Below, piece by piece: positions 13,833 through 38,104 of a stretch of DNA of 64,000 bases. The position numbers and the translations under genes are program-made. The notes beneath the pieces were generated by a model that was given only the letters and a program-made list of their open reading frames with translations, made no database searches and was not told the DNA's origin. The first letter of the stretch is position 1, and the number at the start of each line of letters is the position of its first letter. This stretch comes from Mytilus trossulus (Eukaryota), in NCBI RefSeq assembly GCF_036588685.1, contig NC_086384.1, forward strand, positions 16,802,001 through 16,866,000, given 5' to 3'.

Positions 13833-15466
13833 TTAAATTGAAAATATAACATAATGTTACATGAATTTAGTCAGTGAAAATGTTGCCTAAATCTTTTTAT
13901 GACAAGACAGTGAATTGAAACCGGGATAAAATAAATATCCTGTCAAATAAATTATCATAGGTACCACGATTTAAAATGAAATCGAGACCAATACAAAAGT
14001 TCGCAACTCTAAGTCACCGCACGGAATTCAATAATGAACAAAACCCATACCGAAAAATAAGCTATAAAAGGCTCGGACATGACAAACGTGAAAAAAAGTT
14101 CAAAAGAGAAAACTAACGAACTGGTTTATGTAAAAACAATAAACATAAAACAGGTTTGACATACAGCAATATACAACAACCCTTGGTTATGTGCTGACAT
14201 TATCCCAAAAGTATTAAATTTCTGTGTAGGTCTTATAACAGTCCTTAGATGTACGTTCACCAGACAGTAAAAAACAGAAAACGAATTGATATGTTTTATA
14301 TCTTTTATGAATGTATGTTATGAACCTTTACTTAATCATTCAAAATAGAAAAATCAAGTACACTATGCATGATTGATATATTATGGGAATTTTATGATAG
14401 TTTAAGGTGATACGAAATTTGTCAATCGAGAGGTTATTCTATAACTGTTTAGGGCAAAATGGTGTACTTCAGCAGAGATGACAGAATCATTTCAAATTGA
14501 GACTAAACATCTTTAAAGAGGAATACCATTTTCCGGCGCTATGCGTCTTCGAATAGTATTCACACTTTAGGATAATCAACCAGATACAAAGTAATTCAAA
14601 ATATGTATTAACAAAAATCAAAGTACATTTATAACGATACCATTTAAATTCGCATTTAAAGCGAAAGTTTTTATAAAACTAAAATCTGAACTTTGCATCG
14701 TACAAATTTAGCTCTAAAACAGTTCTTCATTTGCAAAACTTGTGGGAAGTTACTAATGAATAAGAAAGGCAAACCATTTTTAAAGCAATACCACTTCCCA
14801 ATATAAACTCATTTGATAATAAAAACACAAAGAACCATTGTGCCAAATGTAATACATGAATGTAGGATTTTATGGGTTTTAATATGGACAACTTAGGCAA
14901 TTAAATTAAAACTTAAGGACTGATTGTCTTGCCAGCTAAAGCATGACAATTTTTATTAAACTGAAATCTAAACTCTTCATCATGAATCTATAACGGTTTC
15001 CAATTTATCAAAGTTGTCGAAAGTTGCTGCTGAATGAGAAAAGCTTACCATTTTCAAAATTAAAATTATTTTATTACCAAAAACACAAAGGAAACCGTTG
15101 TTCAAAATATTTAATATGAGTGTAAGTATTTATGTGGCTAATAAGGACAACTTTGGTAACTGAAATAAAAATCTGGAATGATATTCCTATCCGCAGTAAT
15201 TTGTAACTTTAGTCTACATACATCGTGCTCCGTGTAAATTCACCATATAAATTCACATATAACAGCTCCATATCAAAATGGTGAAATGACCAGATTTAAT
15301 AGAAGACTTTGAGCATGTTGTTTTAACATATATAATTAACGTCATCCGTGATAAATAACTTTTAAAATAATTCATTGTATCCCTCGTTTTCCAAGGTAAG
15401 TATTATTGCATTGATGAATATGAAATATTTTATGCAGAAATACGTTTCAAAAATGTTATTTTGCAG

Positions 15467-15538
15467 GAACTTATGGAGCAACAAAATTTCAGCACTCGAC
15501 GTGAATATCTTTCAAGGTTTGACGTCACTCGAGATATT
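15467..15538 (+). CDS. LRR micro-exon A (72 nt, phase 2-2): (L)NLWSNKISALDVNIFQGLTSLEI(L)
   Basis: Acceptor tgttattttgcAG ends at 15466 and donor GTAAGT starts at 15539. Length is 1+23x3+2 nt with no stop. Fits the 24-aa typical LRR consensus xLxxNxIxxLxxxxFxGLxxLxxL; TT|G across the splice junction rebuilds Leu. Confidence 0.9.
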
Positions 15539-16027
15539 GTAAGTAACTTTATGCCGTTAAAACATAATTTGCATTTACATGTATGTGTTGCTGATTTACT
15601 GTCGCAAAGATTTATCTTCTCTTTTTGAAAACATTTTGCAATGTTCCTACTAAATTAATAAATGCCTGTTCATTCAATTTGATATAACGTGAAAGCTTAA
15701 CCAATTTTTAGAATTAAAAAAATTAGAACATTCAGATTAATGTTTTTGAATTTTTAAGATAAGTCAAGGTGATATAAATGTTTTGAAAACAGAGGTTACC
15801 TTGTATCTGTTTAGGGCAACGTAGTTTTCTTTTCGAAAAAAAACTTGAGACCGAACCTTGCTAGAGAGGAATAGCATAATCGATCTAGTGGTATACATTT
15901 GCACATCAGAGATTAGCAGTACATATTTTCAAAACAGTGAAATATTAGCACTTTGACAACTTCAATTTGACTTTGCCCAAAAGAAAAAACAAGAAAATGA
16001 TACAAAGTTACTAAATATCTATTGTCA

Positions 16028-16838
16028 TTATACCCCCGCTTTAAAAAAGGGGGGGGGGTATACTGTTTTACCTCTGTCTGTCAGTCCGTCCGTCAGTCCG
16101 TCAGTCCGTCAGTCCGTCCCATTTCGTCACATTTTTCTCAGGAACTACACATCCACCCTTTCTGTAATTTGGTATCAACATTTATATATGTCAGCCATAC
16201 CGTGTGATGCGTTTTCAGATTCATCATTCATCGACTTCCTGTTTACCGAACACTTGTATGATTTTACACATGATAGCCAAGTTGAAAATTTTCGTCACAT
16301 TTTTCTCAGGAACTACAATAAAAGGATTTCTGAAATTTGGTTTCAGGGTTTATCTAAGTCGGCTATACCGTGTGATGCGTTTTCAGATTGATCACTCGAC
16401 AACTTCCTGTTTACCGAACTCTTGTATGATTTTACACATGATAGCCAAGTTGAAAATTTTCGTCACATTTTTCTCAGGAACTACAATACAAGGATTTCTG
16501 AAATTTGGTTTCAGGGTTTATCTAAGTCAGCTATACCGTGTGATGCGTTTTCAGATTGATCACTTGACAACTTCCTGTTTACCGAACACTTGTATGATTT
16601 TACACATGATAGCCAAGTTGAAAATTTTCGTCACATTTTCCTCAGGAACTACAATACAAGAATTTCTGAAATTTAGTTTCAGGTTTAATTTAAGTTAGCT
16701 ATACCGTGTGATGCGTTTTCAGATTCATCACTCGACAACTTCCTGTTTACCGAACACTTGCATATTTTTACACTATTAATATTATCCACTTGCGGCGGGG
16801 GTATCATCAGTGAGCAGTAGCTCGCAGTTTCACTTGTT
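16028..16838 (+). mobile_element. Helentron-associated (HINE / DINE-1 / pearl-type) element with 168-bp core repeats
   Basis: Starts TTATACCCCCGC with a nearby inverted copy, then a (GTCC/GTCA) microsatellite at 16075-16120. 168-bp units marked at 16197, 16365, 16533 and 16701. 3' inverted repeat gcgggggtat plus hairpin gagc-agta-gctc. Inserted in a T run and absent at 36968. Confidence 0.88.
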
Positions 16839-18427
16839 TCCACCTTTTTTCTACAATATTATTAGAATATGTATAAATTTCGTTTCGATTAATCTGGGTG
16901 CCGGTTTTTTTTTCTCAAAAAAGATATGGACGTGCGGATTTAAGTTCTTTAAATGATGAGATTAATCCAAGTACTCTTCTCTCTGACCTCCTTCTTTTTT
17001 GTGTTTTTTATGGTAATAACCAAGATATAACTTTTTATAACATGTATAGGAGGATTATACACATCGCTATATCAGTTGTATATTTCGATAAAATCCGACT
17101 CTGATCTGTTACAAAAGTCAAAACATAATTGGTCATAACTTGTATCCCAATCAGCAACGCTTTGGTCAATTCTTACTGAACATGAAAGGGAAACCGTTTT
17201 TAGACCAACATTACTTCCCAAAAATCCTATTATAAATACACAAAGGAAACCATTGTGTAAAAAATAGTGCATGGCTCGAAACTTTCATATGGTTAATACG
17301 AACAATTTAGATAACCGAAATAAACATTATGGACTGATATTTCTGCCAGCATCATTTCATCACTGGTGTCTGTCTAGACATAACCCCATTGAGTTAAACC
17401 ATATCTTCGCTCGAGATTGAGATATTGAAATGGGAGTTTTGATATCGAGGGATAAATATGCGTATCATTATGTTAACACTGGTGACGACGAGGCTGTAGT
17501 AAATATGGTATTAAGATCATTTTGTTTCTATTCAAATGTGTGATCAATTATGTGATTAAACCGTCTGAAGACTGGATTGTTTTAGCCGAACATCAACCTG
17601 TTATTTGGTGCATTAATCATTTAAGTCAAAACTATAACCTTGTATTTTTATGTCAACACTTGTTACGACGAAGCTGTAGTAAATAAGATAAATTTGTTTG
17701 TATTCAAATTTGTGATCGATTGTGTGATTTAACTTTCTAAAGACTTGATATATATTCTAGCCAAACATCAACATGTAACTTGTTGCAGTAATCATCTACG
17801 TCAAACATGAACTATAACCTTGTATTGTAATGTAGACATTTATTACATTGTTTGCAATGAACAACAGTGATTTCCCAGTAAAATAAAAACCGATAACTTA
17901 ACATGTGAAATAAACCCAATTAGTTCACTCCCCTAACGTCATACAACAATGTGGTTTCTACATTGTCAATGTAATAAAAAGAATAACTTATTAATGAATT
18001 CAAGTATCAAGAAATAGTGAACTCGTGATCGGACAACACTGATAATTAACGTATACGCTACGCGCATTTGTGAATTGTTTGGTCACTCGTTGAACATTTT
18101 TCTCATTATAAATTATAATCCTGGTACATTTGATAACTAATTATTGTCAGCAGTAAAACGGTATTTAATTTGACAAAGTTGTCTTTACCTAATACTTAAC
18201 GAGAAAGGTAGAAAATTATCAGACCAATATCACTTTACCAAAAATGTTTTAGTGAAATAAATTAAAAGTAAATGGTTATGCAAAATACAATATACCTTAA
18301 AATAATAGATGAGGTTGAAATGGACAACTAAGGTAACTGTACTGAAACTGTCAGCATTATTCGGCGGTTATTTATTTGTCTGCCTGCACACAACAACGTA
18401 ATCCTTAACGTAATGGTCACTTAATAT

Positions 18428-20062
18428 CACTACAAAAGTCAAAAAGTCTGAAAAGACCAGTTTTTGTCTGAATTTGCATAAATTTTTACTTGACATTCTT
18501 AATTTGTCTGCATAATTTTTGAAAATTCTTGACATAGTACTAGTTTGTCTAAAAAGGTTCTTGATTTTTCTTGACAAGTGTTTTGACAGTATTAACATTG
18601 TCTTAAAATTTCTCGACACTTCCTGTATCATCTGATAAGAGTCTGGATTAGTCTCGACCAATTCTTGACTGTCTTAAATTTGTCTCGATCTGTCTTGACA
18701 TATTCTTGACATTCTTAATAATGTCTGAATTTGTCTTGACATATTCTTGACATTCTTTATAATGTCTGAATATGTCTTGACACATTCTTGACAGTATTAA
18801 ATATGTCTTGACACTATCTCAACAGTATAAATTTCGCCGGTACGGTTTATGAAATATTTTGGGTTTGTGTGGCTAAAAAAAGAGGAGGGGGGCTTTCGTG
18901 TTGGTCAAAGAATTTTTTATCAACAAAAATTTGTGATAACGGTCTCCTTCCTGAAAAGAAAAAAAATGTTTAGATCTATATTATGTATGTTTGTTTGAGA
19001 CCAATGAAATTATTGATTAAAAATTATTAAATTCAACACTCAAATTTGAATAGTAAATAGAAATCATTGATGGGACCCATTATGAATACTTTTTTTATTA
19101 TTATTCCTGGAGTAGATAATAATTTTCTTTTAATCTTTGAAATGTTTATGGCAGGTCAACTGATAAGTTGTATGGCTGATTATAGGTTAATCAGTAATTG
19201 CTATTTGACAGTTGCGTGTATTCTGGGGTGTGTTATAACTTAATTTCATGGGGAACATCCTGTCCATGTATAATACTGAATATATATATTCCAACAGATG
19301 ACATTACACAAATTTTTCTTCTGTTAAATGAATGATTTTATGTCATCATAATTTGCTATTTATATAAACCACATTTTTGTACAATAATTATTTACAATAT
19401 TAACATTGGATATATTGAATGTAGAGTGAAATATGTCTACCATATGATTGGTTTTAATAATTTAATTAATAATTGAGATTTAGGAATCAAAACTTGTATT
19501 TTTTACAAAAAAACACATTTAAATTGTTTTATATCAACACACCCTCATTTAAATTATTTTATACATTATATTTCGTAGCCGTATTTGCATTTGTGAAACT
19601 ATTTAAATACCAAAATTTTCAATTGTTTTACATGCCCAACTTTCATATTTGTTGTAAGCAATGTAACTTAAAATCAACAGTATATTATGAAAAAGAAATA
19701 AAGATTACAGTTATATTATGAATATTGGTCATGATTTGTAAAACTTAGAACTTTCAAGTAAATTTAAGACACAATTCAAAATGTTCAGAATATGTCAAGC
19801 CAAACTGAGAAAGAATAAGAATGTCGAGAATATGTCGAGAAATTTCAAGACAGTATTCAAATGTGAAGAATTTGTCAAGAAATTTTAAGACCATATTCAG
19901 AATGTCAAAAATATGTCGAGTAAATTTCATAAAAATTTGATATAAATGAGAATTTGTCAAGAAAAATTAAGACACGAGTCATACTTTTGGAGAATGTCAA
20001 GTAAAAGTTCATGCAAATCAAGTCAAAAACTGGTCTTTTCAGACTTTTTGACTTTTGTAGTG
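18428..20062. mobile_element. Non-autonomous CACTA (EnSpm) element, 1635 bp
   Basis: Perfect 39-bp TIRs CACTACAAAAGTCAAAAAGTCTGAAAAGACCAGTTTTTG and 3-bp TSD TAT (18425-18427 and 20063-20065). Subterminal ~11-bp tcttgaca repeats are oppositely oriented at the two ends. Empty paralogous site near 33737. Confidence 0.92.
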
Positions 20063-20368
20063 TATGGAACGCATTAAATGGAGGGACAAATGATACAAGT
20101 CAGAAGACATCACTTCAAATCTTCAAACACTGTTGTACAAGATGGTCATTGAAATATTTGTATTCAAGTTCATCATTTATAATGCGGTAATACTGTCTAA
20201 AAACAACATCGATTTCTATATACTTAAGGGCAGATATTGAAGATGTTTTCGTCTCATGATAATAATGGAAGCCATAAATGAATAAAAACTTTATATCATA
20301 TTATAAAAATCTGCCAGTATGTTGTCAATATATATCAACCAGTTTATAAACAGATATACTTCTGTTGG

Positions 20369-20741
20369 ACCCCCAAGGGTGAATGGGGAATAGACATATG
20401 GTCACTTGGTCTTCTTCCGACCGGCAGTAAAACGCTTGCCGAAGTGGGGCGTCCGTCTGGCTGTGCGGGATGTATCAAGTTCGCAGTCACGTACGGTCAA
20501 ATTGGGGACGTTAAATCCGATGCCTCGTGTAAGGAGAGTGGGCTGTTGCAAGGCAAAATTTCTGTCCCTATCCAATATACCCTCATTTTTCAGTGGCATT
20601 CCAAATTTCCCCGACCATCATCCCAGATGGCCTCTATTAATTCAAGACCTACCTATAGTATTTTTTGTGAACTTGTTCTCGTCCTGAATATGCATGAAAT
20701 ATTTGCCACTGGACGTTAAGCAACCAACAATCAATCAATCA
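20369..20741 (+). mobile_element. 5'-truncated SINE with (CAAT)n tail
   Basis: GC-rich island flanked by the 13-bp TSD ATACTTCTGTTGG (20356-20368 and 20742-20754). Tail ggacgttaagcaaccaacaatcaatcaatc. No clear Pol III boxes left. Confidence 0.85.
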
Positions 20742-21595
20742 ATACTTCTGTTGGTCAATAACTGCAATGACGAATACTCTTATTTTTCGGAAAAAATGTT
20801 ACTTGTTTGATCTTGTATTATATCACCCTTTCCTTTTATTAATTGTTTTTCAAGTAACACAAGATTTTGAAAAAGCAACATATATAATCAATGTTCTTAT
20901 CTTTTTAAAAATATTTTCCATCGAGCTTTTAAAGTATCGATCGATTCAGCTTGTTGAATGATTAAAGACAACCATTTTGATGAAAATAAACAAACGTCGT
21001 TTAAATTGATCCTATTGATTGTAATAAATTGCCATTTGTTTTCAAAGATATATTAATTTGTGTCAATTGTATTTAGTATTACAAGTAAAATTAGAAATAT
21101 ATGCAAGAAATAACAATTAAGGTTATTGAATTGCTGGTAAGGAGTCTGAATTTGTAAATGGAGAGGTTTGCCTATATCTGATTAGGACAAGATAGTTTAC
21201 AGGATCAAAGACGACAGCATTCTTAATCAAATTTAGATAAAACCTTGATGAATAGGAAAAGCATTATCGATGTTTCTATGTTTCAACTAACCAAATACAA
21301 CCACCTGATTGTAAGCACATTGTATGTATATTTGAACAGCACACGGTTTGAGTGTCTAGGTAAAACACGTTCCTCTGTCACCCTCAAACAGTGACGTTAC
21401 AAAATAACATTGAGAAGAAACTTTACAAAAAATCTGAAGAAATTCATTTAACAAATCAACATGAAGGATCTTTCAGTAATACCTTTAATTGGTTTTCAAA
21501 GAAATATACTATACTTCAGTTTTTCTTATTTTTCTACTGTAAATATGTATGGATTGAGGAATACAAAACATTTTATGCAGACATATGTTTTACAG

Positions 21596-21667
21596 GTGGC
21601 TGAGTGCCAATCAAATTGAAACGCTTGACGTAAATCTCTTTAATGGTTTGACGGCTCTGGGGACATT
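21596..21667 (+). CDS. LRR micro-exon B (72 nt, phase 2-2): (L)WLSANQIETLDVNLFNGLTALGT(L)
   Basis: Acceptor tgttttacAG ends at 21595 and donor GTAAGT starts at 21668. Open frame, same LRR register as exon A. Confidence 0.9.
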
Positions 21668-24208: not shown

Positions 24209-27200
24209 AAATTAATATATGAGGTTCAAACGCATCACTTAGGTAACTAAACGTAAATCGTTCTGCCAGCATTCTTCGGGGGCTATCGTAGGTTAGGCAT
24301 TAAAACAATACACAAAAACATATATTATATACAGCAATACACAACAACCCTTGACGTATGTGCTGACATTCGCCAAAAGGATTAAATTTACAATTAGACA
24401 AAAATAACAGAAAGCGAATTGATATGTTTTAGATATTTTATGAAAGTATCTTATGAACCTTTATTTAATCATTCAGAATAGACAAACCAAGTACATTATG
24501 ATTGATTTTATTTAAATTTTATGACAATTTAAGACGATAAGACATGTGTCAATGCACAGTGGTAAACTACTGTTTCCTTTATTTGTCCTGTATCTGTCTA
24601 GGACAATATGGTGTACTTGACACAGATGATAGTATCATTTCAAATTGAGACCAAACATCCTTAAAGAGGAAAACAATTATCACTCCGGCGCTATACGTCC
24701 TCGAAAAGTTTTCACATTTTCTGAACAAACACAACATTTTATTCGGAATAATTTCAAGTGCCTTTATTTTCTCCTACTCTAGGATAATTAACCAGATACA
24801 AAGTAATATAAAACATGCATCAGAAATTTCAAGATATAACGATGAAATGTGAATCAACATTTAGAGCAAAAGTGTTTATAAAACTTGAATCTCAACTTTG
24901 CATCGTACAGATGTATTTCTAAAACAGTAATACATTTGAAAAACTTGTGGGAAGTTACTGTTGAATGCAAAAGGCAAATCATTTTCAAAGCAATATTACT
25001 TCCCAAGATAAACTCATCAGAAACACAAAAGAAACCGTTGAGCCAAATTTGGTATATGAGTAGGATTTGATGGGGTTAATATGGTCAACTGAATTTAAAA
25101 AAAAATGAACAGCTTAATATTTTTTCATTATTTTTGTATTCATATTCAGCATTGAGAATGACGTGAAACTGTATAAAAAGCTTATTTTTCGCAGATATGT
25201 AGGATGTTATTTTTAACATTGATCATTTGAATACATATAATGTATGGCAAATAAGACAATTTCAATTTTGAATTTATCAATTTCCCCCAACTTAGTAGCA
25301 ATCAACCAAATTAACCTGCATATGGGATATAAATTTCCCAACTCATTCAGTATTCAAAAACTTCCATCCTCTACTCAGACTTTATAAAACGTCACCAGTG
25401 TCTGAGCAAAAAGTTGATGAACCAAGGTTATGTAAAAAATGTATGAAAAAAAGTTACGTGTTAAAGTGTTCTTTGTTTTGTCTTTGTAAATTAAGAACTT
25501 GTACGGTTTATACAAAAAAGAAGATCTAGTATGATTCTAAATGAGACAATCATTCACAAGATACGAAATGACACAGACATTAACAGCTATAGGTCATTGC
25601 ACGGCCTTCAACAGTGAGCAAAGCCGGTACATCATAATCAGCTATAAAAGGACCCGAACTCACAAATGTTAAACAATTCAATCGAGAAAACTAACGACCT
25701 AATTAATGTACAAAAAAATGAACGAAAACAATATGTAACATAGCAACAAACGACGACCACTTAAGTACAGGCTCCTGACTTGGGACAGGCAACTACATAC
25801 AGAATGTGGCTGGGTTAAACATGTTAGTGGGATCCCAATCCTCCTCATAACCGGGGACAGTTGTGAAACAGTACAGAATAAGAATGAACATTATAATCAG
25901 TTCATAAAGGGTTAACACATCAGATGGATATAAATAGAAATATATCTAACAAGTGTACAGATTTGAGAGTACTTGCAGTTTTTGACAGCTAGTTAAAAGC
26001 CAATAATAACTAATAAAAATAATCATGCATCTAAGACTAATGTATCAATCAGTTCACATCCAACATCCAATGGATTTAGTGTAAATTTGTAATGAACAGT
26101 TAGAGAAAAACATGACTTTGTGCAATGCCAAGATACAGGAATCTAAAGATTGTAGATCCATGCAAGTGTACATGTATATAACAATATTATTTTAGTTTGC
26201 TTTTATTTAACTGATAACAAAATGAATGTAGATACCAATAAAACAATATTCAAAAATCTTATCACAGTATTTGAAAGGTAACCATTTGGAATAAGTTTAT
26301 TTAAAGGATTGATAAGTTTACCAGGATCGTTTTCAAAATTTGCGGGCACGGTAAACAACATCGCCGTAAAATGAGGATGTGCCTATCCGTTTGAAATAAG
26401 TTTTCTACAGGACTGGTACAAAAAAACTTTAAAACCAAATCTTTATATCTTTGGAAGAATTTTGTAAAAATTAATTAAGGTAGATTAATCCATGACTTAA
26501 TAATTTACCAGTAATACATAGATTCCATTGGCTAAAATCTAAAACGTCACAACAGACACAGGCATAATGAACTAGTTGTGAAATATTAAAACCGTAAGAT
26601 GGTGCCAAAGAAACATCAATATCGAAAAAAAGAAAAGAAACAATAGGGGACGAAAAATCATCCCTTTTGTCGTAAACGGGTTTCCCGTGTAAAACTGAAA
26701 TATCTAAATCCAAGAAAGGACAGTTATTACCATTTAAATTTGATTTATTTAAGGCAAGTTCCTTTGGGTAAATTTCGGCAGTATGTTTAGAAAGTTCTTG
26801 ATTATTTAACGAAAAAATATCATCAAGATAACGGTAAGTGTTTTGTTGAATTTTTAATTAAATGCAATTTAGACGTTTTTTTCTGAGTTTGGTCATAAAC
26901 TGTGATTCATAACAGTACAAAAACAAGTCCGCTATGAAAGGGATGCACTTAGTGCCCATGTGCCCATGAGAATACATTCAATCTGTCGATAAACTTTGTT
27001 GTTGAAGCGTACATAAATATAATCAAATAGAAAATTAACAGCTTCAATCATCTCATCAAACCTCCAGTAAGTATATCTAGCATATTTACCTTTCCCATTA
27101 GAGAAGAAAACTTTAAATTAGTTGCAGCAAATATATTTGCATTCAGATTTACCAAACGACCATTTATTTAAATAGGAAATCTTTTATTTGATAAGATTGT

Positions 27201-29433
27201 GTGGAAGTATAGTGTAAAGAGTTGAAAAGTCAAAACTTTCAACAGAATCAAAAGGACCATCAAAAGCAAGTAATTTGTCTAAAGCTTCTAGAGAATATTT
27301 TACATTCCAAAAAAAAGATAATTCCACTATTTTCATACATTTTATTTCAAAAGTTTATGATTAGTTATTTGATAGTTAAGGAACTAGTTAAAAACACTGA
27401 AAGATCAGTTGTAGAACACTTACTAGAGGCCGAGATGAAACGATAGTTTACTGTTTTTTGTTAAGTTTATGTAACCAATACATAGTATGGAACTTCTAAT
27501 GTTCAGGAGGGGCCTTCAGCTGTGATGTCGATATGATATATCTGTTTACTATACGACTATCTGTGAAGCGCACGGACTTGAATGTAGATGAATTTAAAAT
27601 TTCATGCTTAAGAACGTCTGTGTTGTATTTACGGCATTGATTTTTATTCTGAAAATATGCGTTTTACAGCTGACTATGCGGTATGGACTTTGCTCATTGT
27701 TGAAGGCCGTACGGTGACCTAAAGTTGTTAATGTCTGTGTCATTTGGTCTCTTATGGCGAGTTGTTCATTGGCAATCATACCACATCTTCTTTTTTGTAT
27801 TATTATCTCTGTTATTTAATTCTGAATTATTCTCAAAATGTGATATTCGAATATCAACAACATTCATACATTTATTTAGAAAAGAAGTCAAGAGATTTTT
27901 TATCAAATTTTTCCCGTTTACACCAATTTTTACAAAACGAGGAGAGATCGTCTTTTGTGACCGGACTACACTGTTTCCAATCTATTTTAGATGGAGACCG
28001 ATATTTTGGTCCTTTTAAAAAATCGATTTTAACCTCTTTGTCTTTGACGATATTGAGGTCCCCATAATAACATGGCCTTAGGGGTCATATCTAAACTTCG
28101 ACGATTTACAGTTTCAAGTTTAAGGAGTATTGTTTTCTACACTGACGTCTGATGTTACTGACATATCACTAAAAAACTTCTGCTTGGTTTTTTGTGTGTT
28201 TACGAAATAATAGGTGGTTCTGTCCATTTGTCCATATTCCATATTTCGTAATATTGTTTTGGCGTGGCTCGGTACTTTGACATTCCGCGTTGTGTTATTT
28301 TCCTATGTTCCGTGTCTTAATGTCAATTTGTTTTAATAGTAATTAAATTATCACCCAATATTGACTACTGTATCCCTATTTTGACATTTTTACCTATTAC
28401 GTCTGTTTGTTTTATTCGCCCATTGTTGTAAATATAGTGGAATTGCATGCTATTGTCATACTAGTGAGAGGTTCAGCTTGATTTAAATAAAAACCAGGTT
28501 TAAATAATTATTTTCTTCATAAGGAAATGTCTGGACTAACGCAGAAATATGACTGTTGTTTAAAATTCGTTTGAAGTGTTTGAGCTTTTTATTGAGCCAT
28601 TTAAAAGTGACTTACCAGTGCTGAATTTCACTCGGAGATAGGTAGTTTTTGGAATATATGTTAGTATGTATGCAATATTTCATTCAGTTTTCACAGATAT
28701 ATCACTGTTCCATTTTTTTCCTATGTTCCAAGGTAAATATTTACATTGATGAATATAACATATTATATTAATGCAAACATTCGTAAATGCAAACAAATTA
28801 ATATTGGCAATAAACTGGCCAACGGATGTCTACTATATTCGTTTGTAAACTAGTATATATATATTGTTCATAAAGGTAAGAGTAATATACCGGAGTTCAA
28901 AAGTCATAAATCGATTGAGAGAAAACAAATCCGGGTTACAAACTAAAACCGAGGAATAAACATCAACTATTAAAGGAAAACAAAGGAACAACAGGAACAC
29001 TGAAGTCCAACAAAAACAAACGTCAACATACATAGAAACGAACTATTTGATAATAAACTGCCATATTCCTGACTTGATACAGGACATTTTAAGAAAAAAG
29101 GTGGGTTGAACCTGATTTATTGGTCGCCAAACCTCCCACTTTATGACAATGTTGAAAAAAATCGCTAAAAAGACAATGCTACGCGACAGAAATACAGCAC
29201 AAGCTCACACAAGAACATTCACCACAGAGAAATGCACAAACATATACAACAATAGTCTTCACAAAATGCAAACCGCAAAACAACAACGAACATATTCAAT
29301 CAACGACAGACACCACCGGATATGTCTAACAGTGACGCGCTTACGTAACTAACATGCAATCTCGTTTTTTTGCAGATATTTTCACAATACTTGTCCAAAC
29401 AAATTGTCATGACAATGTTGGTATTGAAAGGCA
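24209..29433 (+). repeat. Segmental duplication, copy 2 (paralog 1-8788)
   Basis: Colinear with 1-3094 plus 6850-8788. Similarity ends at ...gtattgaaaggca. Confidence 0.95.
26260..28170 (-). mobile_element. Decayed Penelope-like RT, second (uninterrupted) copy
   Basis: Same motifs (ORF 26471-26713). Lies inside duplication copy 2. Confidence 0.8.
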
Positions 29434-30104
29434 ATTTTATAATTATTTGGACTACAAACGATAAAACATAACACATTATCAAACCGACACCATAACAGAA
29501 ACATCAAAAATAAAAACGTGAATGTTGGATGTACAAAACACCGAGACGCGTTGTATAGCAATGCAAATTCTCACTCGGTATAACAGTCATTATCGGGAAT
29601 ACGTCACGTTCGGTACTTAACAGACAGACGAAATAGATGTTAAACCACAATCGAAGACGTGGTAAAAAAGTCATCTGTTAGTTTAGACACAGCTACATCG
29701 TATAGATCAACAATTCGTTAAGGTGTCCATAAAAATGTACGGAGTTTCATTTCAAATCTGTACTCTGGTGGAGCAGTTTCTGCGTGCACACTCCTAAAAA
29801 AATTGATTTAATTTTGACATTATTTTGATAGTTTACAAATAAGATTTATAAACGTGTTTTCATTTAATTTGGTATTAAATGTTAACTGTACATGTTCATG
29901 AAATCACAAATTAGACCGTACAACTTTATGTTATTGAATTGTTTCATAAACTCTCAGGTGATTTGATTTTTGTCAGTGGATACGTTACCCTGAGATAGTT
30001 ATTTGAGCATAGACGGCATAATTAGAATTAGAATTAAAAACAAACTTTGATTAAGAGGAATAGCATTATCGATCTTGTACTATACATTTGAATATCGTTG
30101 ATTA

Positions 30105-32700
30105 GCATTTCCAGATCAGTTAAATCTTTGCACTTTTAGACTACTTCATTCTGAATTTTCCCCTAATATCAGTTATCATTTTCCTCTCTTTTGCTGCAAT
30201 ATTCCTAAATTATATACACATTTTGTTTTGTTAGAACTGAGTACCGTTTCTAAGAAATAAAAAATAAGATATTGACGTTTATAAAAAAAAAAAAATATTG
30301 GTACCTATGATGAGTTTATTTACAACCACTGGGTCGATGCCACTGCTGGTGGAGTTGTAATTCCCCGAGGGTATCACCAGCCCAGTAGTCAGCACTTCTG
30401 TGTTGACTTCAGTTATCATTGATGTGTTCATAATCATAAATTAACTGTTGAAACTTTGAATTTTTGAAATACTGATTAGTCTTCTGTAGAAGAAACGCCC
30501 GTCTGGAGCAAATATAAAACTTCAATTCTGGTACCTATGATAAGTTTATTTATATTTATGTAATTGAATTGATAAGACAGCTCAAAGTCCTTTCACCTTT
30601 GAACTTCTTCTGAATTGATCCTTTTATTGTAATAGACAAGGTATAAGTTATTATAAGATTTGTATAAACAAATATCGATAGAAAATACTTATTCGAGTGC
30701 TAAAGTCGAAACATAATTGTTCCTTTGTAGCTCCAAAATTGTACCCCAATTTGCAAAAGTGTAATGGTTTTTACTGATTGGTCAAGAGAAAACGTTTTAG
30801 GACCAATACTACTCCCCAAAAATCCTTTGATAAAAAAATACGAAGGAACCCACTGTGCAAAATATAATATATGGGTAACGGATTTTAGGTGGGTAATACG
30901 GACATCTTAGATAATCAAAACTCAAGAATTATTGACTGATATTTCTCCCAGGATCTCTTTAATATGTTGTCTGCTTAGACATAACTCCATTAGGTACACC
31001 AAATATTTGCTTGAGTTGGAGATGATGTAATGAGGATTTACAGCAATATATCAACCAGTTAACAAATAGATATACTAGACTTCCGTCGGCCCATCATTGT
31101 TTTGACGAATACGCCACATGAAATGTAGAAATGTGAAATGCAGTATTGTAGGTACCTACAAACCAATCAAATTAAGTTACAGAAGTCCCCATATGTTGCT
31201 TGTTAGCTGTCGTGTTATAAAACCCCTCTCTTTTTATACATTATTTTTTTCAAGTAACATAAGTTTGAGAAAGCAATATATATACTCACTATTTTTACTT
31301 TTGATAAACGTATTGCAATTTCCGGAAAGATGTTTTAACATCGTTTAATTAATTTCGTATAATGTTTAAAGTGTACCATTTTTGATAAAATAAAAAGGTT
31401 GTTTGAATTGATGTTATTGAATATATCAGATATTAATATGTCAATGGAGTGGTTACCTTGTATCTTTTTACGATTAGATAGATAACTGGAACAGGAATGA
31501 CAAACTGTTTAGTATGATTAAGATTTATCTTTCCTTTTTCTGTATTTGAATGTTTCATTTCTTTTCTCAGTTTTTCAAAAATCGTCTGTTAAGTTGAAAG
31601 TGAAATGTGAAAATTTCTTTTTAATTTCATTTGGTATCATTTCTAAGAAACAAATGATACACACATTTATATATGTGTAATAAAATTGATAATATAACTT
31701 TGGTGACATGAATTAAGTCAATGGAGAAGTTTCCCTATATCGTTTTATGTCACGACAGATAACTAGATCCGGGATGAAACTAAACTCATCATAGCTACAA
31801 TCATTAAATTAAAATTGATACCAATATAAAGATGGAAACTAAAGGTCACCTGAAGGAATTCAAAAATGAACAAAACTCATACCGCATAAGTTAGAAACGG
31901 CCCTTTCATGGCCAATATATCACTTGACTTATTTGCTGACATTCATTTAAAAGGATCAAATTCCTGTGAAGATCGTTAAACACTTCTATAGTAAGATCGA
32001 ACACATATGCATTTGTACTGATTTTGTGACATAGATAGATACCCCATATCCTTTGTTTTTCTATGTTATGTCTTTTATGAGCACATGATCCTCAACTCAA
32101 TCATACAAAACAAATGAATTCAGTTGTAAAAGATCAAATACATGTTTCTATTCCATTCAAAACCCGGACCATTTTTTTCCACCACAAAATAAAAAAAACA
32201 ACAGTACATTAAAATTGATTTTATTTGCATTTTATGATAATTTAAGATGATAAAACATGTGTGTGAGGTTATCCTGTTTCTATTTACGACAATGTAGTTT
32301 ACTTGAGCAGAGATGAACGAATCATTTCAAGTTGACCCTTAACTACTTTAAGAAAAATTACTTTATCAATCCGACTTTATACGTCTTCGAATAGTAATTC
32401 ACATTATCAGAACAACCATAACATTGTTAGAACTATTTCCATGTGAATATTTTTTATTTTCTCCTACTTAGGGATAATTAACCAGATTCAAATTAATATA
32501 AAATACGTATAATCAAATATCTATATATAACAATAAAAATAGACTTCATATGTAGCGCGAAAGTTTTTATTGAACTAAAATCTGAAGTTTTTATCATAGC
32601 TTTAAAACGGTGCCCCATTTGGCAAGTTACTGTTGAATGCGAAAGCTTACCATTTTCTAAGCAATATCACTTTCCAAAGTAAAATAATTTGATTAACTAA
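30105..32700 (+). repeat. Older duplicated block (paralog ~51185-53670)
   Basis: Colinear from gattagcatttccagatcag onward, with scattered substitutions and indels. Confidence 0.85.
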
Positions 32701-35421
32701 AAAAAAAGAAACCATTGTGCCAAATGTGATACTAGTATATGAGTGTAGGTTTTTAAGCTGTTAATATGGACAACTGTGGTAACTGAAGTAAAAATTCTGG
32801 ACTGATATTCCAAACAGCAGCATTTTGTAACTTTTTTCTACTTACATCGTGCACCATTGATAAAAACACAAAGGAAACCATTGTGTAAAAAATAATTTAT
32901 GGCTTGAGATTTTTTGTGGTTAATACAAACAACTTCAGCATCATTGCATCACTGGTGTCTGCCTAGACATTACCCCATTTAGTTTAACCATATCTCGCTC
33001 GTGATTGAGTTGTTAAAATGCGTCTTTTGATATCGAGAGCTAAATATGCGAATTAATATTTCAACACTGGTTACGACGAAGCTGTAGTAATATGGTCTGT
33101 AACATCATTTTGTTTGTATTCAAATTTATTATCGATGATGCGATTGAACTGTCTGAAGACTAGATTTTTAAGCCGAAAATTTACATTTTATATTTTGAAT
33201 AAATCATTTAAGTCATGCATGAGCTATAAGCTTGTGTTGTTTTGTAGACATTTATTACATTGTTTGCAGTGAATAACCGTGATTTCCCAGCGAAATAAAA
33301 ACCGATCATTTCACATGTGAAATAAACTCGATTATACTGAAATATTGAACTCGTGAATGACCAACACTGACAATTAACGAATATGCTACACCGCATTCGT
33401 GAATTAATTGGTTGTTTTGTCACTCGTTGCATATTTGTCTATTTAGAAATTATGTATTCTCAGCAGTAAGACGGTTTTTCTTTGGCAAAGTTATCTTTAC
33501 CTAATATTGAATGAAAAAGGTAAAAAATTATCATACCAATATCAATTTACCAAAAATATGTTAGTGAAATAAATTAAAAGTAAATGGTTATGCAAAATAT
33601 AATATAGCGTAAATTAATAGGTGAGGTTGAAATGGAAGACTTAGGTAGCTGAACTGAAACTGTTATTTCAGCATTCTTCGGGGGCTATTATCTGCGTGCA
33701 TACAACAACGTCCTACTTAACGTCATGGTCACCGAGTATGCAACTCATACAATGGCGTGATAAATGAAACACGTCAGTAGACCTAACTTCAAATCTGCAA
33801 ACACTTTTGCAAAAGATGGTCATTGAATTATTTGTATTCAAATTCCTCATTGATATGCAGTAATACTGACTAAAACAACCTCGATTTCTATTAACTTGAG
33901 GGCAGATATTGAAGATGTTTTCGTCTAATAATAATGTAAGCCATAGATGAAAAACAACTTTATAAAATATTGTGAAAATCTGCATGTATGTTGTCAATAT
34001 ATATCAACCAGTTAAAAAAATCATATCTACTAGACTTCCGTTGGCCAATAACTACAATGACGAATACCATAACTGTACTAAAAAATGTTACTGGTTTTAT
34101 GTCGTAATATAATACCCTCTCCTTTTATTAAGATTTTTTTTCAAGTATCACAAGTTTTTGAGAAAGCAATATATATATAGTCAATGTTTTTATCTTTTTT
34201 GAAAACTTTCCACCAAGATTTAAAAATATGGATTTATTGAGTTTGTTTAATGTTTAAAAATTACCATTTTTATGAAAATAAAAAAAGCGTTTAAATTGAT
34301 CATAATGAATAGACCAGATAACTGAATGTCATCAATTGCACTTGTCTTTCAAAGATATATTAATTTGTGTCAATTGGATTCAGTATTACAAGTTTATTTA
34401 ACACTATGAAAGAAGAAAAAAGACTTTCGTTTTATGTTATTGAATTACTGGCATAATGCAAGGGGTAAAAAAATTTAAACAAAGAGGTTTGCTTATACAT
34501 TAATATGAATATGTTTAGGACAAGATAGTTTACATGAGGAAAAATGACAGAATTCTATATCAATTGAAAACTAAACCTGAAATAATGGCAATAGTAGTTT
34601 ATCGATATTCAAACGTCATAACGTCGATTGAGCGAAAACAAATTCGGGTTACAAACTATAACCGAGGGATACACTTCAACTACAAGATGAAAACAAAGGA
34701 AAAAGAGGAACTCTGAAGTGAACAAAATACAAACGCCAACATACACAGAAGAATAAAGAGAAATAACATTTTTGATCTGGTGCAATGCATTTGTACACTC
34801 ATTTTAGTAGTTCAAAACGATACACAATGCACATTGGTCTATTTCAGTTTGACTTACTTGTATATAGAAAATTGACAAAACAGTTTAAATGAAAAAGTGA
34901 ATTCAGATATAATATGTCATATCTTATATATATATATGAGCAGATACGACAGAATTTCGAATAAAATTTGGACCAAACCTTGCTTAAAACGAAACGAACT
35001 TAGCTAACTGGGGCATGGATAACAAACTGATCATTATAATTGCGATTAAACTTTCAAAAATTATAAGGCTTTGTATGCATGTATCACTTTTTTCATTTTT
35101 TTTCTCCTTTTCAAAACCCTTCTGGAATTTTAAAGAGAAATGTATAAAATTTTGTTTCAATTTGATTTGGTATTATTTCTAAGAAATTATTGATAATTGA
35201 AAGGAATAGAAAAATAAGGACCTTCAAATTCTTGTTATTGGACTGCTGATTTAAGTTATAGGAAAAGGAGTTTTGACAACGGAGAGGTTTATCTGTATCT
35301 GTTTAGTACAAGAGAGTTTTGGTCTGTTGTCTATGTCACAAATGTTCTTAAAAAAAGAGTTTTCCTATTTCTTTTGATGACAAGATTGTTAACCCTGATC
35401 GAGAAAGGTATAAACAAATAG

Positions 35422-38104
35422 CAAAGTACATTTATAACGATACCATTTAAATTCGCATTTAAAGCGAAAGTTTTTATAAAACTAAAATCATAACTTTGCA
35501 TCGTACAAATTTAGCTCTAAAACAGTCCTTCATTTGCCAAACTTGTGGGAAGTTACTAATGAATAAAAAAGGCAAACCATTTTTAAAGCAATACCACTTC
35601 CCAATATAAACTCATTTGATAATAAAAACACAAAGAACCATTGTGCCAAATGTAATACATTAATGTAGGATTTTATGGGTTTAAATATGGACAACTTAGG
35701 CAATTAAATTAAAACTTAAGGACTGATTGTCTTGCCATCTAAAGCATGACAATTTTTATTAAACTGAAATCTAAACTCTTCATCATGAATCTATAACGGT
35801 TTCCAATTTATCAAAGTTGTCGAAAGTTACTGCTGAATGAGAAAAGCTTACCATTTTCAAAATTAGAATTATTTTATTACCAAAAACACAAAGGAAACCG
35901 TTGTTCAAAATATGCAATATGAGTGTAAGTATTTATGTGGCTAATAAGGACAACTTTGGTAACTGAAATAAAAATCTGGAATGATATTCCTATCCGCAGT
36001 ATTTTGTAACTTTAACCTTCATACATCGTGCTCCGTGTAAATTCACCATATAAATTCATTATAACAGCTCCATATCAAAATGGTGAAATGATGACATGAT
36101 GTTTTAATACTTGAGGTAAGAAGAACCAAATATAGTATAGCTACACTGCTATCGTTGTAGCTGTTGTAAAATATCGTCACTTAGACATATATTTTTTGTG
36201 TATTCAAATCCGGCATTGAGTATAAAGAAACACTGTCTAAAGACCAGATTTAATAGAAGACTTTGAGCATGTTATTTTAACATATATAATTAACGTCATC
36301 CATGATAAATTACTTTTAGAATAATTCATTGTATCCCTTGTTTTCAAAAAAGGTAAGTATTATTGCATTGATGAATATGAAATATTTTATGCAGTAATAC
36401 GTTTCAAAAATGTTATTTTGCAGGGGTTTAGCGTGGAACAAAATTTCAGCACTCGACGTGAATGTCTTTCAAGGTTTGACGTCTCTCACGGACTTGTAAG
36501 TAACTTTATGCCGTAAAAACATAATTTGCCTTCATGTGTTGCTGATTTGCTGTCGCAAAGATTTATCTTCTCTTTTTGAAAACATTTTGCAATTTTCCTA
36601 CTAAAATTGATAAATGCCTGTGCATTCAATTTGGTATAACGTGTAAGCTTAACCAATTTTTAGAATTCATTCAGATTAATGTTTTTGAATTTTTAAGATA
36701 AGTCAAGTAGATATAAATGTTTTGAAAACAGAGGTTACCTTGTATCTGTTTAGGGCAACGTAGTTTTCTTTTCGAAAAAAAAATTGAGACCAAACCTTGC
36801 TAGAGAGGAATAGCATAATCGATCTAGTGGTATACATTTGCACATCAGAGATTAGTAGTACGTATTTCCAAAACAGTGAAATATTAGCACTTTGACAACT
36901 TCAATTTGACTTTGCCCAAAAGAAAAAAACAAGAAAATGATACAAAGTTACTAAATATCTATTGTCATTTCCACCTTTTTTCTGCAATATTATTAGATTA
37001 TGTATAAATTTCGTTTCGATTAATCTGGGTGCCGGTTTTTTTTCTCAAAAAAGATATGGACGTGCGGATTTAAGTTCTTTAAATGATGAGATTAATCCAA
37101 GTACTTTTCTCTCTGACCTCCTTCTTTTTTTTGTTTTTTATGGTAATAACCAAGATATAACTTTTTATAACATGTATAGGATGATTATACACATCGCTAT
37201 ATCAGTTGTATATTTCGATAAAATCCGACTCTGATCTGTTACAAAAGTCAAAACATAATTGGTCATAACTTGTATCCCAATCAGCAACGCTTTGGTCAAT
37301 TCTTACTGAACATGAAAGGGAAACCGTTTTTAGACCAATATTACTCCTCAAAAATCCTATTATAAATACACAAAGGAAACCATTGTGTAAAAATAATTTA
37401 TGGCTTGAGATTTTATGTGGTTAATACAAACAACTTAGATAACCGAAATAAACATTATGGACTGATATTTCTGCCAGCATCATTTCATTACTGGTGTTTG
37501 GCTAGACATAACCCCATTGAGTTTAACCATATCTTCGCTCGATATTTGCCACTGGACGTTAAGCAACCAACAATCAATCAATCAATACTTCTGTTGGTCA
37601 ATAACTGCAATGACGAATACTCTTATTTTTCGGAAAAAATGTTACTGGTTTGATCTTGTATTATATCACCCTTTCCTTTTATTAATTGTTTTTCAAGTAA
37701 CACAAGATTCTGAAAAAGCAACATATATAATCAATGTTCTTATCTTTTTAAAAATATTTTCCATCGAGCTTTTAAAATATGGATCGATTTAGCTTGTTGA
37801 ATGTTTAAAGACAACCATTTTGATGAAGAAAAAAAAACGTCGTTTAAATTGATCCTATTGATTGTCATAAATTGCCATTTGTTTTCAAAGATATATTAAT
37901 TTGTGTCAATTGTATTTAGTATTACAAGTAAAATTAGAAATATATGCAAGAAATAACAATTAAGGTTATTGAATTGCTGGTATACGGTAAGGAGTCTGAA
38001 TTTGTAAATAGAGAGGTTTGCCTATATCTGATTAGGACAAGATAGTTTACAGGATCAAAGACGACAACATTCTTAATCAAATTTAGATAAAACCTTGATG
38101 AATA
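35422..38104 (+). repeat. Exon-bearing segmental duplication, copy 2
   Basis: Contains exon C. Lacks the HINE insertion (empty site attgtcatttccacc at 36961-36975) and lacks ~3.3 kb at junction 37542. Confidence 0.93.
36424..36495 (+). CDS. LRR micro-exon C (72 nt, phase 2-2): (L)GLAWNKISALDVNVFQGLTSLTD(L)
   Basis: Acceptor tgttattttgcAG ends at 36423 and donor GTAAGT starts at 36496. Direct paralog of exon A within the 14619/35422 duplication. Confidence 0.9.

Follow-up and report, generated by a model that had tools for sequence, protein, structure and literature searches.

Probable diversifying selection on the concave-face codons of duplicated single-repeat LRR exons in a putative receptor gene of Mytilus trossulus

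Introduction

The VLRs of lampreys and hagfish combine a conserved LRR framework with diversity at the concave beta-strand positions in a modular repertoire. [quoted passage not shown] Mussels, to our knowledge, are invertebrates without adaptive immunity. Shuffling of one-LRR exons, combined with selection on concave residues, is known from brown algae and ciliates. In the LRR-ROCO and LRR-kinase genes of Ectocarpus each LRR is one 72-nt exon, the modules have been duplicated and shuffled, and site models point to positive selection at concave-face residues, with omega of about 3.5-6 (Zambounis et al. 2012, PMC3341825). Tetrahymena has thousands of equal-length 90-bp LRR exons with phase-2 introns between them, and its exon/intron units, with LINE-like elements within the introns, spread by unequal crossing-over (PMC6564038). 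For human LRR domains (NLRP3), the portion of the report consulted describes a strict exon-repeat match that permits in-frame skipping of LRR exons (PMC6642158). No animal case of single-LRR-exon shuffling with concave-residue selection was found in the literature searched.

Here, a 64,000-nt stretch of M. trossulus DNA (the window) was analyzed. Like those of Ectocarpus, its LRR exons consist of one LRR per symmetric 72-nt exon, and the 'type II' exon of the alga (xLxxNxL...LxxL) matches the mussel exon register (PMC3341825).

Results

Differences between exons A and C are concentrated in five codons

The two exons compared and the intron elements that precede them are as follows.

15396-15466, plus strand, 71-nt intron element 5' of exon A, from sequence comparison with the copy at C
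15467-15538, plus strand, LRR exon A, 72 nt encoding one 24-residue repeat, x residues N, W, S...E, I
36353-36423, plus strand, 71-nt intron element 5' of exon C, one difference from the copy before A
36424-36495, plus strand, LRR exon C, 72 nt, interior shared with A, x residues G, A, W...T, D

Both exons have AG/.../GT borders, a G as first base and TT as the last two bases, and the junction Leu is formed by the exon-final TT and the initial G of the next exon. A recount agreed with the original observation that A and C differ at 14 of 72 nt and that 12 of the 14 differences are held by the five x codons (1, 3, 4, 22 and 23). The swaps (AAC/GGT, TGG/GCG, AGC/TGG, GAG/ACG and ATA/GAC) change 12 of the 15 x-codon nucleotides, giving N-L-W-S...E-I in one protein segment and G-L-A-W...T-D in the other. 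The original counts for the rest of the exon (2 of 57 nt, one I>V and one synonymous) and for the 71 nt on its 5' side (one mismatch) were also reproduced. The clustering was significant both within the exon (hypergeometric P = 2.5e-9) and against the flanks of ±200 nt (Fisher P = 2e-11). The five codons had been identified as the x positions of LxxLxLxxN, and the AlphaFold model of the paralog P0020 bore this out: pLDDT exceeds 90 throughout its LRR part, where strands return every 24 residues and the beta-strand lies on x-L-x across the junction.

The intron had been described as nearly identical. This was true of the level of identity, 94-98% over the approximately 1.3 kb that can be aligned, but several indels are present. 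Flank divergence was about 3% over about 1.3 kb and 4.5-6.3% within ±200 nt. It was not raised beside the patches of difference at the exon ends, and identity reaches the exon border and continues through the 47-nt interior. The use of the 71 nt as a neutral intron benchmark did not hold up, since they are conserved across paralogous genes on other chromosomes. The element before A opens AG/GTAAGT (AG at 15394-15395) and closes with TTTTGCAG. It is 82-90% conserved in the paralogous arrays on other chromosomes, its family-wide column conservation is 0.6-0.9, and RNA folding of the element revealed no special fold. Because it is conserved family-wide, the element is constrained and is not a neutral yardstick. 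The A/C result is unaffected, as the wider, unconstrained intron gives the same conclusion.

The exons lie in duplicated blocks of different ages

The duplicated segments and the remaining modules of the window are listed below.

1-21254, plus strand, larger segmental duplication unit with exon A; the copy at 24209-38104 carries exon C
14605-17418, plus strand, recent duplicated block, A side (self-BLAST)
35408-37546, plus strand, recent duplicated block, C side (self-BLAST and alignment)
21596-21667, plus strand, LRR exon B, 72 nt, x residues W, S, A...G, T
47690-47760, plus strand, decayed LRR exon D, 71 nt, a recent copy of exon F (C12:16908598)
54644-54719, plus strand, decayed LRR exon E, 76 nt, frame disrupted by an expanded T run

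Self-BLAST aligned 14605-15289 with 35408-36091 (96.9% identity), 15285-16029 with 36239-36969 (91.7%, exon and indels counted) and 16837-17418 with 36968-37546 (95.7%). Pieces of the larger unit are 92-98% identical to the 24209-38104 copy and are separated by TE insertions/deletions. The duplicated kilobase blocks show graded ages (0.3%, 2%, 5% and 10%), and the history of the array is mosaic, the A/C flanks being about 95% identical versus 76% for the neighboring B/D flanks. Exon D has 71 nt due to an acceptor shifted by 1 nt and would thus be out of frame if spliced in. Near-identical copies of A are found outside the window at C12:16793550 (A', 1 nt off) and C12:16871422 (A'', exon identical), and copies of B at C12:16799378 (B') and C12:16879177 (B'') provided two more test pairs.

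The x-codon excess recurs in other pairs

The proposal of diversifying selection and/or patchwork conversion was supported by recurrence of the excess in several independent pairs, namely B/B'', A'/A, B'/B, u5/u6 and D/F, and at the same codons in DNA and RNA contigs from other individuals or species. In B/B'' the five codons hold 10 of 11 differences, with flanks 5.7-7.7% apart. The youngest pairs, A'/A and B'/B, have introns/flanks 0.25-0.5% apart and are each separated by a single exonic change, AAC>GAC in the former and GGG>AGG in the latter; the two changes are nonsynonymous and fall in x codons (P = 0.008 for this placement). The changes in u5/u6 amount to 6/15 at x codons versus 4/57 at other exon sites, with the 5' patch alone replaced, and those in D/F to 4/15 versus 1/56, with flanks 6.1% apart. 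Pooling of 8 recent pairs, a set that is partly non-independent and in which changes are unpolarized (no outgroup), gave pN(x) = 0.31, pN(other) = 0.024, pS(other) = 0.038 and 0.037 for introns. The pooled pN at x codons is therefore about 8 times the intron divergence, part of the flank used for comparison being itself constrained. The excess is uneven: u1/u3 shows 0/15 x changes yet has flanks 4.5% apart, and A/A'' shows 0/15 at 1.8%, so that either change is episodic or some modules are constrained.

The expectation that variation would be uneven in a wider exon set was confirmed with 27 exon units (25 distinct exon sequences), where no columns of the approximately 250-nt unit are less conserved than the x codons, which fall below even the adjacent intron. 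In A/C and B/B'' the changes affect 18/20 first and second codon positions and 4/10 third positions, and the transition/transversion mix is ordinary. The pS at x codons is nominally 0.16, a value resting on multi-hit codons. Most x codons carry 2-3 changes, and the third-position change in AAC>GGT is unnecessary for the amino-acid change; these features fit patch replacement as well as stepwise selection.

The modules are transcribed and spliced

The RNA evidence consists of contigs from run X15 of a congener (organism B), as opposed to reads of the assembled animal. Over exon C the depth was 444-2175, falling to 12-14 in the flanks, and both borders of the exon showed spliced junctions. Canonical junctions in the contigs link an A/C-type exon to a B-type exon, to a second A/C-type exon and to an upstream ..ALQT exon. 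These results demonstrated head-to-tail splicing and transcription of the modules, and the confinement of depth to the exon, together with the canonical exon-exon junctions, upheld the earlier claim of present or recent function for the exons. Further x-codon versions were found in the X15 contigs (D-S-W, E-W-G, A-F-D and A-L-D, with 3' ends reading R-I or K-T). A DNA contig from another individual keeps the flanks and 3' patch of C and has L-L-W-R as its 5' patch; of its 8 differences, 6 fall in three x codons. The exact 5' patch of C was not found in any sequencing run compared.

The gene is predicted to encode a single-pass receptor

Modules A, B and C lie in a gene of at least 204 kb (C12:16720328 to 16924013), about half of which was read. 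It is predicted to encode a receptor that spans the membrane once, in which an LRR array and an LRRCT cap are followed by a transmembrane helix and by an acidic tail bearing tyrosine motifs. Exon translations fit LxxLxLxxNxL, the approximately 24-residue 'typical' extracellular LRR type. Exon A alone matches Pfam LRR_8 with E=0.0025, its single repeat leaving it short of the cut-off, and database paralogs reach LRR_8 at 65 bits. An LRRCT-like exon (C12:16912384-16912560) is 63% identical to residues 1-59 of P0002, the match including 2 stops, probably from running past the exon. No LRRNT exon was found in the DNA examined; the paralog P0006 carries an LRRNT at 36 bits. The terminal exon (L043:3165-4013) encodes a TM helix together with a three-fold acidic repeat. 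For the tail exon at C12:16923213, paralogs of 40-57% identity occur directly downstream of eight other arrays on the same strand; at the C12 locus it is preceded by an LRRCT exon, as are its counterparts at four of the eight further arrays. Because an LRRCT exon and a homologous TM/Tyr-motif tail exon come after the array, both on its strand, the locus is assigned by sequence to a Mytilus LRR-TM-tail family with at least 8 paralogous loci.

Database searches returned protein relatives from Mytilus species and none from outside the genus; they have an LRRNT-LRR-LRRCT-stalk-TM-tail layout and are named 'LRRC15-like', 'peroxidasin homolog' or 'uncharacterized'. The receptor family appears to be undescribed and restricted to Mytilus. 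A Toll-like receptor was rejected since the terminal exon and P0006/P0020/P0021 gave no TIR match, and a leucine-rich GPCR of the LGR, relaxin-receptor or GRL101 type, a group that also has one LRR per exon, was rejected because the terminal exon and every database relative have one TM helix in place of seven. A Foldseek search with a paralog model gave target TM-scores of about 0.83-0.88 to LRRTM2, Nogo receptor, one LGR4 chain and chondroadherin, and of 0.61 to NGL-2, the best matches being 25-31% identical to the model.

Discussion

The observations are best explained by duplication of modules followed by very strong diversifying selection, to which short-tract exchange may contribute; we give this reading a probability of roughly 0.6. 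Modules A, B and C each encode one 24-residue LRR in symmetric form, with G as first base and TT as last two, within one giant gene, and the array would expand through tandem copying of blocks of exon and intron that are roughly 24 to 54 kb long. After copying, structural codons and introns would stay nearly static, while the five codons with side chains facing out of the concave beta-sheet would be replaced at about 10 times the intron rate or more, until saturated. Two x codons lie at the 3' end of the exon and three at the 5' end, and each strand is thus assembled across a splice junction. The driver would be positive diversifying selection for new ligand-binding surfaces, and the receptor would probably act in recognition of non-self or of a partner.

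The closest competitor, which we consider unlikely as a full account, is short-tract gene conversion, in which the 9-nt and 6-nt end patches would be copied from allelic or assembly-absent A/C-type modules and selection would only retain the products. Such tracts would leave no other trace because the donors would share interior and introns. The differences do form dense patches that act semi-independently, both being swapped in A/C and B/B'' and the 5' patch alone in u5/u6 and in the DNA contig from another individual; the multiple hits in most x codons fit as well, and hidden donors are plausible since other animals have more A/C-type versions than the assembly. Nevertheless, the 1.3-Gb assembly has no other sequence within 1 mismatch of either patch of C, an absence that favors selection somewhat. 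In the youngest pairs the x codons have changed by one nucleotide at a time, patches with intermediate counts exist (1, 3 or 4 changes), and conversion relocates diversity and leaves its origin unexplained. Concerted evolution would instead make the modules old and the x-codon divergence slow, with introns and framework homogenized by conversion/unequal crossing-over and selection sparing the x codons. The mosaic history of the array and the likeness of exon-adjacent intron elements even between arrays on different chromosomes speak for it. However, tracts would have to end repeatedly within a few bases of the patches, the kilobase blocks include unconstrained TE-rich intron at 92-98% identity with graded ages that fit simple duplications, and RNA/DNA contigs suggest rapid turnover between species, which makes this history quite improbable.

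A local mutational process at exon ends, such as error-prone repair or deaminase-type hypermutation tied to splice sites/transcription, would account for changes lying within 12 nt of each splice site and for the nominally raised pS at x codons. It would hardly spare the Leu codon between x codons and the following Asn codon, which lie inside the patch and never change, or the unchanged neighboring intron bases; the bias toward first and second codon positions and the lack of a strand-specific or base-specific signature also make it very improbable. Least probable of all is an artefact of assembly errors, false haplotype duplicates or LRR-looking non-functional pseudo-exons. The A', A and A'' units are 98-99.8% identical in a repeat-rich region, the 5' patch of C was not reproduced exactly, and D and E of the same array are dead. 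Errors, however, would not hit five codons and spare splice sites, frame and framework; an independent DNA run shows the 3' patch and flanks of C, spliced RNA contigs contain A/C-type exons, including two in tandem, and the copies are distinguished by indels and TE content.

Fresh exon copies with their own introns as a clock amount to an unusually clean natural experiment on the re-specification of a binding surface, framework and intron being static while five codons saturate. The many paralogous loci and the tyrosine-motif tails make the family a concrete candidate for diversified recognition. A broader reading, which we offer tentatively and as rather unlikely in its entirety, is that mussels have, in the germline and in the form of exon modules, the equivalent of a variable LRR receptor repertoire for individual-specific recognition. 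Single-repeat modules of giant LRR-TM genes would be copied, their five concave-face codons re-specified at more than 10 times the neutral rate, and the modules would vary between individuals and species; as every module is symmetric, combinatorial inclusion by splicing may occur, each junction creating a new beta-strand. If true, these would be receptors for immunity or self/non-self discrimination, which is relevant to transmissible neoplasia in Mytilus.

Among known systems, Ectocarpus differs in being a brown alga whose LRRs have intracellular Roc-COR or kinase partners, whereas the mussel is an animal with a predicted extracellular LRR-TM receptor; an LRR-ROCO gene of that type was rejected, the C-terminal partner being a TM and tail in place of a Roc-COR GTPase. 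Intact LRR exons occur on the non-coding strand of Ectocarpus introns (PMC3341825), and none was found on the minus strand in the window. Mussel introns, unlike those of Ectocarpus, are kilobases to tens of kilobases long, and against the algal omega values the mussel x codons are saturated at 3-6% intron divergence. Tetrahymena, in contrast, is a ciliate with 90-bp exons, and the emphasis there is on gene birth and not on site-specific hypervariability (PMC6564038). An agnathan VLR was rejected because the mussel modules are ordinary exons with canonical AG/GT borders joined in RNA contigs; unlike VLRs, they appear to carry no sign of somatic change. Human NLRP3-type proteins are cytosolic NLRs, and the portion of the source consulted reports no hypervariable x codons between exon copies (PMC6642158). 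LRRTM2, NGL-2, Nogo receptor, the LGR4 ectodomain and chondroadherin, the best Foldseek matches of the paralog model, are all capped extracellular 'typical' 24-residue LRR solenoids, but the mussel product lacks sequence-level orthology to them, has a different cytoplasmic tail and is built from a one-repeat-per-exon array of near-identical modules that is absent from them. Plant NLR/RLP LRRs (xxLxLxx), like other fast-evolving immune LRRs, resemble the mussel modules in diversifying selection on solvent-exposed beta-strand residues, and their loci too are clustered and variable in copy number. In plants, however, the comparison is between genes or alleles with mostly multi-repeat exons, whereas in the mussel it is between freshly duplicated single-repeat exons of a single gene, for which the intron serves as an internal clock.

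Exons A and C

The window (C12:16802001-16866000, on the chromosome C12 of a 1.3-Gb genome) is AT-rich, with approximately 30% GC, and contains short exons that each encode one 24-residue leucine-rich repeat (LRR). The modules within the window and next to it are listed below, in window coordinates unless a chromosome is named.

Modules of the LRR exon family
15467-15538: exon A, 72 nt, bordered by AG and GT; x residues N,W,S...E,I
36424-36495: exon C, 72 nt, bordered by AG and GT; x residues G,A,W...T,D
21596-21667: exon B
C12:16793550: A', near-identical copy of A
C12:16871422: A'', near-identical copy of A
C12:16799378: B', copy of B
C12:16879177: B'', copy of B
47690-47760: D, decayed module, 71 nt after an acceptor shift
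54644-54719: E, decayed module, 76 nt with an expanded T run
55391-55561 and 55936-56106: two degenerate module copies, 99.7% identical

Exons A and C both begin with G and end with TT, so that TT and G together complete a leucine codon wherever two modules are joined; every module is symmetric. When the exon is aligned to the repeat as L-x22-x23-L / x1-L-x3-x4-N, codons 1, 3, 4, 22, and 23 (x codons) fall on the x positions of LxxLxLxxN, in agreement with the original prediction. The differences that it had counted were reproduced exactly: 14 of the 72 nt differ, 12 of them in these five codons, with 2 differences in the other 57 nt and a single one in the 71 intronic nt upstream. Thus, 12 of the 15 nt of the x codons differ, a clustering with P = 2.5e-9 within the exon and P = 2e-11 against the flanks. 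The differences form two dense patches, one at each end of the exon (5' patch, codons 1, 3, and 4; 3' patch, codons 22 and 23), and a four-way alignment with two copies located outside the window showed that identity extends as far as the splice sites and across the exon interior.

Intron divergence

Exons A and C are part of a segmental duplication (window 1-21254 and 24209-38104) in which the matching pieces are 92-98% identical and are separated by transposable element (TE) insertions and deletions. In the four-way alignment, the alignable intron around both exons diverges by about 3% over about 1.3 kb; divergence within 200 nt on either side is 4.5-6.3%. The 71 nt upstream of the exon had been taken as the yardstick, but this element is not neutral. 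It shows 82-90% conservation in paralogous arrays on other chromosomes, as does a stretch of about 25-90 nt on the downstream side of the exon, and column conservation of the exon-flanking intron elements is 0.6-0.9 across 27 units. The excess in the x codons nonetheless stands because the wider, TE-rich intron shows equally low divergence. In a profile of the whole family, conservation within the unit is lowest at the x codons, lower than in the introns.

Next to every LRR exon, the intron sequence (about 75 nt on the upstream side and about 25-90 nt on the downstream side; e.g., window 15396-15466 and 15539-15630) matches the exon framework in its conservation across the paralogous arrays on C10, C12, and C13. 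These regions may be splicing signals that define 72-nt exons within huge introns. The upstream element showed no stable RNA fold (z = 0.31). The A/C-type exons share a pyrimidine tract and, directly behind it, AG/GTAAGT, located exactly 71 nt upstream (window 15394-15401 and 36351-36358, and likewise at A' and A'' in loci L002 and L003). This juxtaposed 3'/5' splice-site pair, located at the end of introns of about 15-25 kb, resembles a recursive splice site; in B-, D-, and E-type units the corresponding site reads GTAAAT and lacks the AG, and no extra exon at the AG/GTAAGT site was present in RNA contigs. At three positions that a search located in paralogous arrays (C10:7893325-7895176, C10:7946912-7947719, and C13:24610671-24612492), the downstream element is expanded directly behind an LRR exon into tandem arrays of 10-19 copies of a unit of about 97 nt.

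The introns of the window are packed with retroelement pieces (8786-12557, 60907-64000, 2264-2647 and 26474-26857 on the minus strand, and 49666-50061). These include LINE-like endonuclease/reverse transcriptase ORFs in copies 96-97% identical and an RNase H ORF (Pfam E = 2e-7); some other repeated ORFs among them had no Pfam match. A 168-nt tandem repeat (window 16122-16773) is found in the A unit and missing from the C unit, and a 69-nt satellite with copies about 95% identical lies between C and D (window 44493-45169).

Other exon pairs

The exon set was drawn from about half of the gene (alternate 10-kb pieces) and from loci of about 3 kb. At least one more unit of the family exists beyond those compared, an LRR-exon-like unit located by search between u6 and A', outside the window (C12:16779322-16779482). 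The pattern seen in A and C recurred in other pairs. Exons B and B'' differ at 11 of 72 nt, and 10 of these sites belong to the same five codons; their flanks are 5.7-7.7% apart. The youngest pairs, A'/A and B'/B, have flanks 0.25-0.5% apart and one exon difference each (AAC>GAC and GGG>AGG); both changes are nonsynonymous and both are in an x codon (P = 0.008). Differences in x codons and at other exon sites were 6/15 and 4/57 for the copies u5 and u6, 4/15 and 4/57 for a pair on C10, and 4/15 and 1/56 for D and its close copy F. Substitution was measured by Nei-Gojobori counts on recent pairs. When eight recent pairs were pooled, pN in the x codons was 0.31, compared with pN = 0.024 and pS = 0.038 in the other codons and 0.037 in the introns. 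The excess is uneven, since u1/u3 (flanks 4.5% apart) and A/A'' (1.8%) have no x changes. Among 25 distinct exons, amino acid entropy was highest at positions 1, 3, 4, and 23 (2.8-3.3 bits); position 22, with 2.5 bits, was on a par with positions 8 and 16, and variability was moderate at positions 6 and 14.

The exons of the window were searched individually, and the structure was modeled on a database paralog, P0020. Its LRR domain had pLDDT above 90, and the model predicted one strand per 24 residues on x-L-x, with each strand lying exactly over the exon junction. The fold matches those of capped extracellular LRR proteins such as LRRTM2, NGL-2, Nogo receptor, and LGR4. Across the P0020 repeats, variation is concentrated at positions 1, 3, 4, and 23, and the framework hardly varies.

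Transcripts and other animals

Contigs of four public sequencing runs were aligned to exon C with 300 nt on each side; those from X16 and X20 stop short of the exon. Run X15 comes from a congener, and while its RNA label was a guess, its spliced contigs showed RNA content. Summed depth in X15 was 444-2175 in the exon and 12-14 in the flanks, and the contigs contain canonical exon-exon junctions. An exon ending in A-L-Q-T is joined to a C-like exon beginning with D-L-S-W, an A/C-type exon ending in R-I is joined to a B-type exon (W-L-D-G-N-Q-I), and A/C-type exons are joined directly to further A/C-type exons beginning with A-L-F-D or A-L-L-D. These junctions in the congener indicated that the modules are transcribed and spliced head to tail, and mutually exclusive use of the exons is not supported. 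Optional skipping of modules is possible.

With an additional exon version, E-L-W-G, the X15 animal has at least five versions with the same interior, none identical to A or C. One unspliced X15 contig keeps the upstream intron (about 6% different) and has Y-L-S-V as its 5' patch. A 243-nt contig of the DNA run X1 keeps the flanks and 3' patch of C and has L-L-W-R as its 5' patch, with six of its eight differences from C in three x codons. These two contigs indicated that the patches vary independently of each other, and between individuals and species. The exact 5' patch of C was absent from the contigs of every run aligned to it.

The host gene

Module F (C12:16908598) is the last intact one, and about 15 kb beyond it an open exon (C12:16923213-16924013; L043:3213-4013) encodes a transmembrane (TM) helix as well as a three-fold acidic repeat containing a Y-A-E-I motif. 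Paralogs of this exon (40-57% identity) are found on the same strand just downstream of eight other arrays of the LRR exon family on C10, C12, and C13. Paralogous arrays include those at C12:30.87-30.97, C12:4.79-4.83, C12:50.22-50.26, C10:7.61-7.64 and 7.89-7.96, and C13:24.57-24.63 and 12.83-12.85 Mb. In this gene (C12:16912384), as well as at four of the paralogous loci, an LRRCT-type exon separates the array from the tail. On this basis, the gene is at least 204 kb long. No LRRNT exon or gene start was found in the portion of the gene that was read.

The database relatives found all come from Mytilus species (coruscus, californianus, edulis, galloprovincialis, and trossulus), and their names are uninformative. 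Three models are complete (P0006, P0020, and P0021): they start with a signal peptide and LRRNT, continue with LRRs, LRRCT, a Ser/Thr stalk, and a TM helix, and end in a tail that carries the motifs E-Y-x-x-I, Y-L-N-P-Y, and Y-T-N-L-Y; the other relatives are partial models. Identity as a TLR was rejected because there is no TIR domain, and as a GPCR because there is a single TM helix and no 7TM domain. ORFs in a small stretch of downstream DNA had no match to Pfam domains, including TIR.

The TM/tail exon is common to the predicted proteins P0002, P0007, P0008, and P0014, where the ectodomains are Sushi repeats (P0002), EGF repeats (P0007), and mucin-like stalks (P0008 and P0014). It looks like a signaling module shuffled among receptor families. 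The tail carries a Src-SH2-like motif (E-Y-x-x-I) and a Grb2-like motif (Y-T-N-L-Y) besides Y-L-N-P-Y; in the gene of the window this block of motifs occurs three times, and C replaces Y in the second and third repeats. The search also located, outside the window, more than 30 densely arrayed Sushi-domain exons (C12:15444000-15481500), each about 186 nt long, spaced about 600 nt to 1.5 kb apart and mostly 86-95% identical in protein sequence to the Sushi domains of P0002 (range about 62-95%).

Origin of the pattern

Relaxed constraint was rejected as the cause of the at least eight-fold excess in the x codons, since it cannot exceed the intron rate. A mutational hot spot at the exon ends is unlikely: the patch includes Leu and Asn codons that are always unchanged, and the neighboring intron bases are intact. 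Furthermore, in A/C and B/B'' first and second codon positions changed at 18 of 20 sites compared with 4 of 10 third positions, and the substitution spectrum is ordinary, with no deaminase-type or A-specific signature among these differences. Concerted evolution that spares the x codons would require conversion tracts that end, time after time, within a few bases, and it does not agree with duplicated blocks that are kilobases long and of graded age.

Conversion in short tracts, with other A/C-type modules as donors, could have helped, as the patches act as units and many module versions exist outside this assembly. We give such a contribution a low probability. A search of the 1.3 Gb with the 16- and 19-nt patterns of the 5' and 3' patches of C, allowing up to one mismatch, returned C itself and chance-level matches only, so the assembly holds no donor; the youngest pairs show single-base steps, and conversion would leave the origin of the diversity unexplained. 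Taken together, these arguments and the points against conversion favor an origin, to which we assign a probability of about 0.6, in which modules would first be duplicated and their concave-face codons would then come under strong, episodic diversifying selection.

Comparison with known systems

In the ROCO and LRR-kinase genes of Ectocarpus, each 72-nt exon encodes one LRR, exons are shuffled, and concave residues are under positive selection; the "type II" exon of these genes is in the same register as the mussel exons (PMC3341825). The minus-strand or inverted LRR exons of Ectocarpus have no counterpart in the window. Tetrahymena has LRR exons of equal length with phase-2 introns that spread as exon/intron units (PMC6564038), and exon-repeat modularity has been described in human NLRs (PMC6642158). 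A limited literature search returned no earlier account of this family in Mytilus and no animal with such a pattern, which is absence of evidence only. The mussel case differs from these systems in having an animal host with an extracellular LRR-TM receptor family that carries tyrosine-motif tails, introns of up to tens of kilobases, and x codons that are saturated against an intron divergence of 3-6%.
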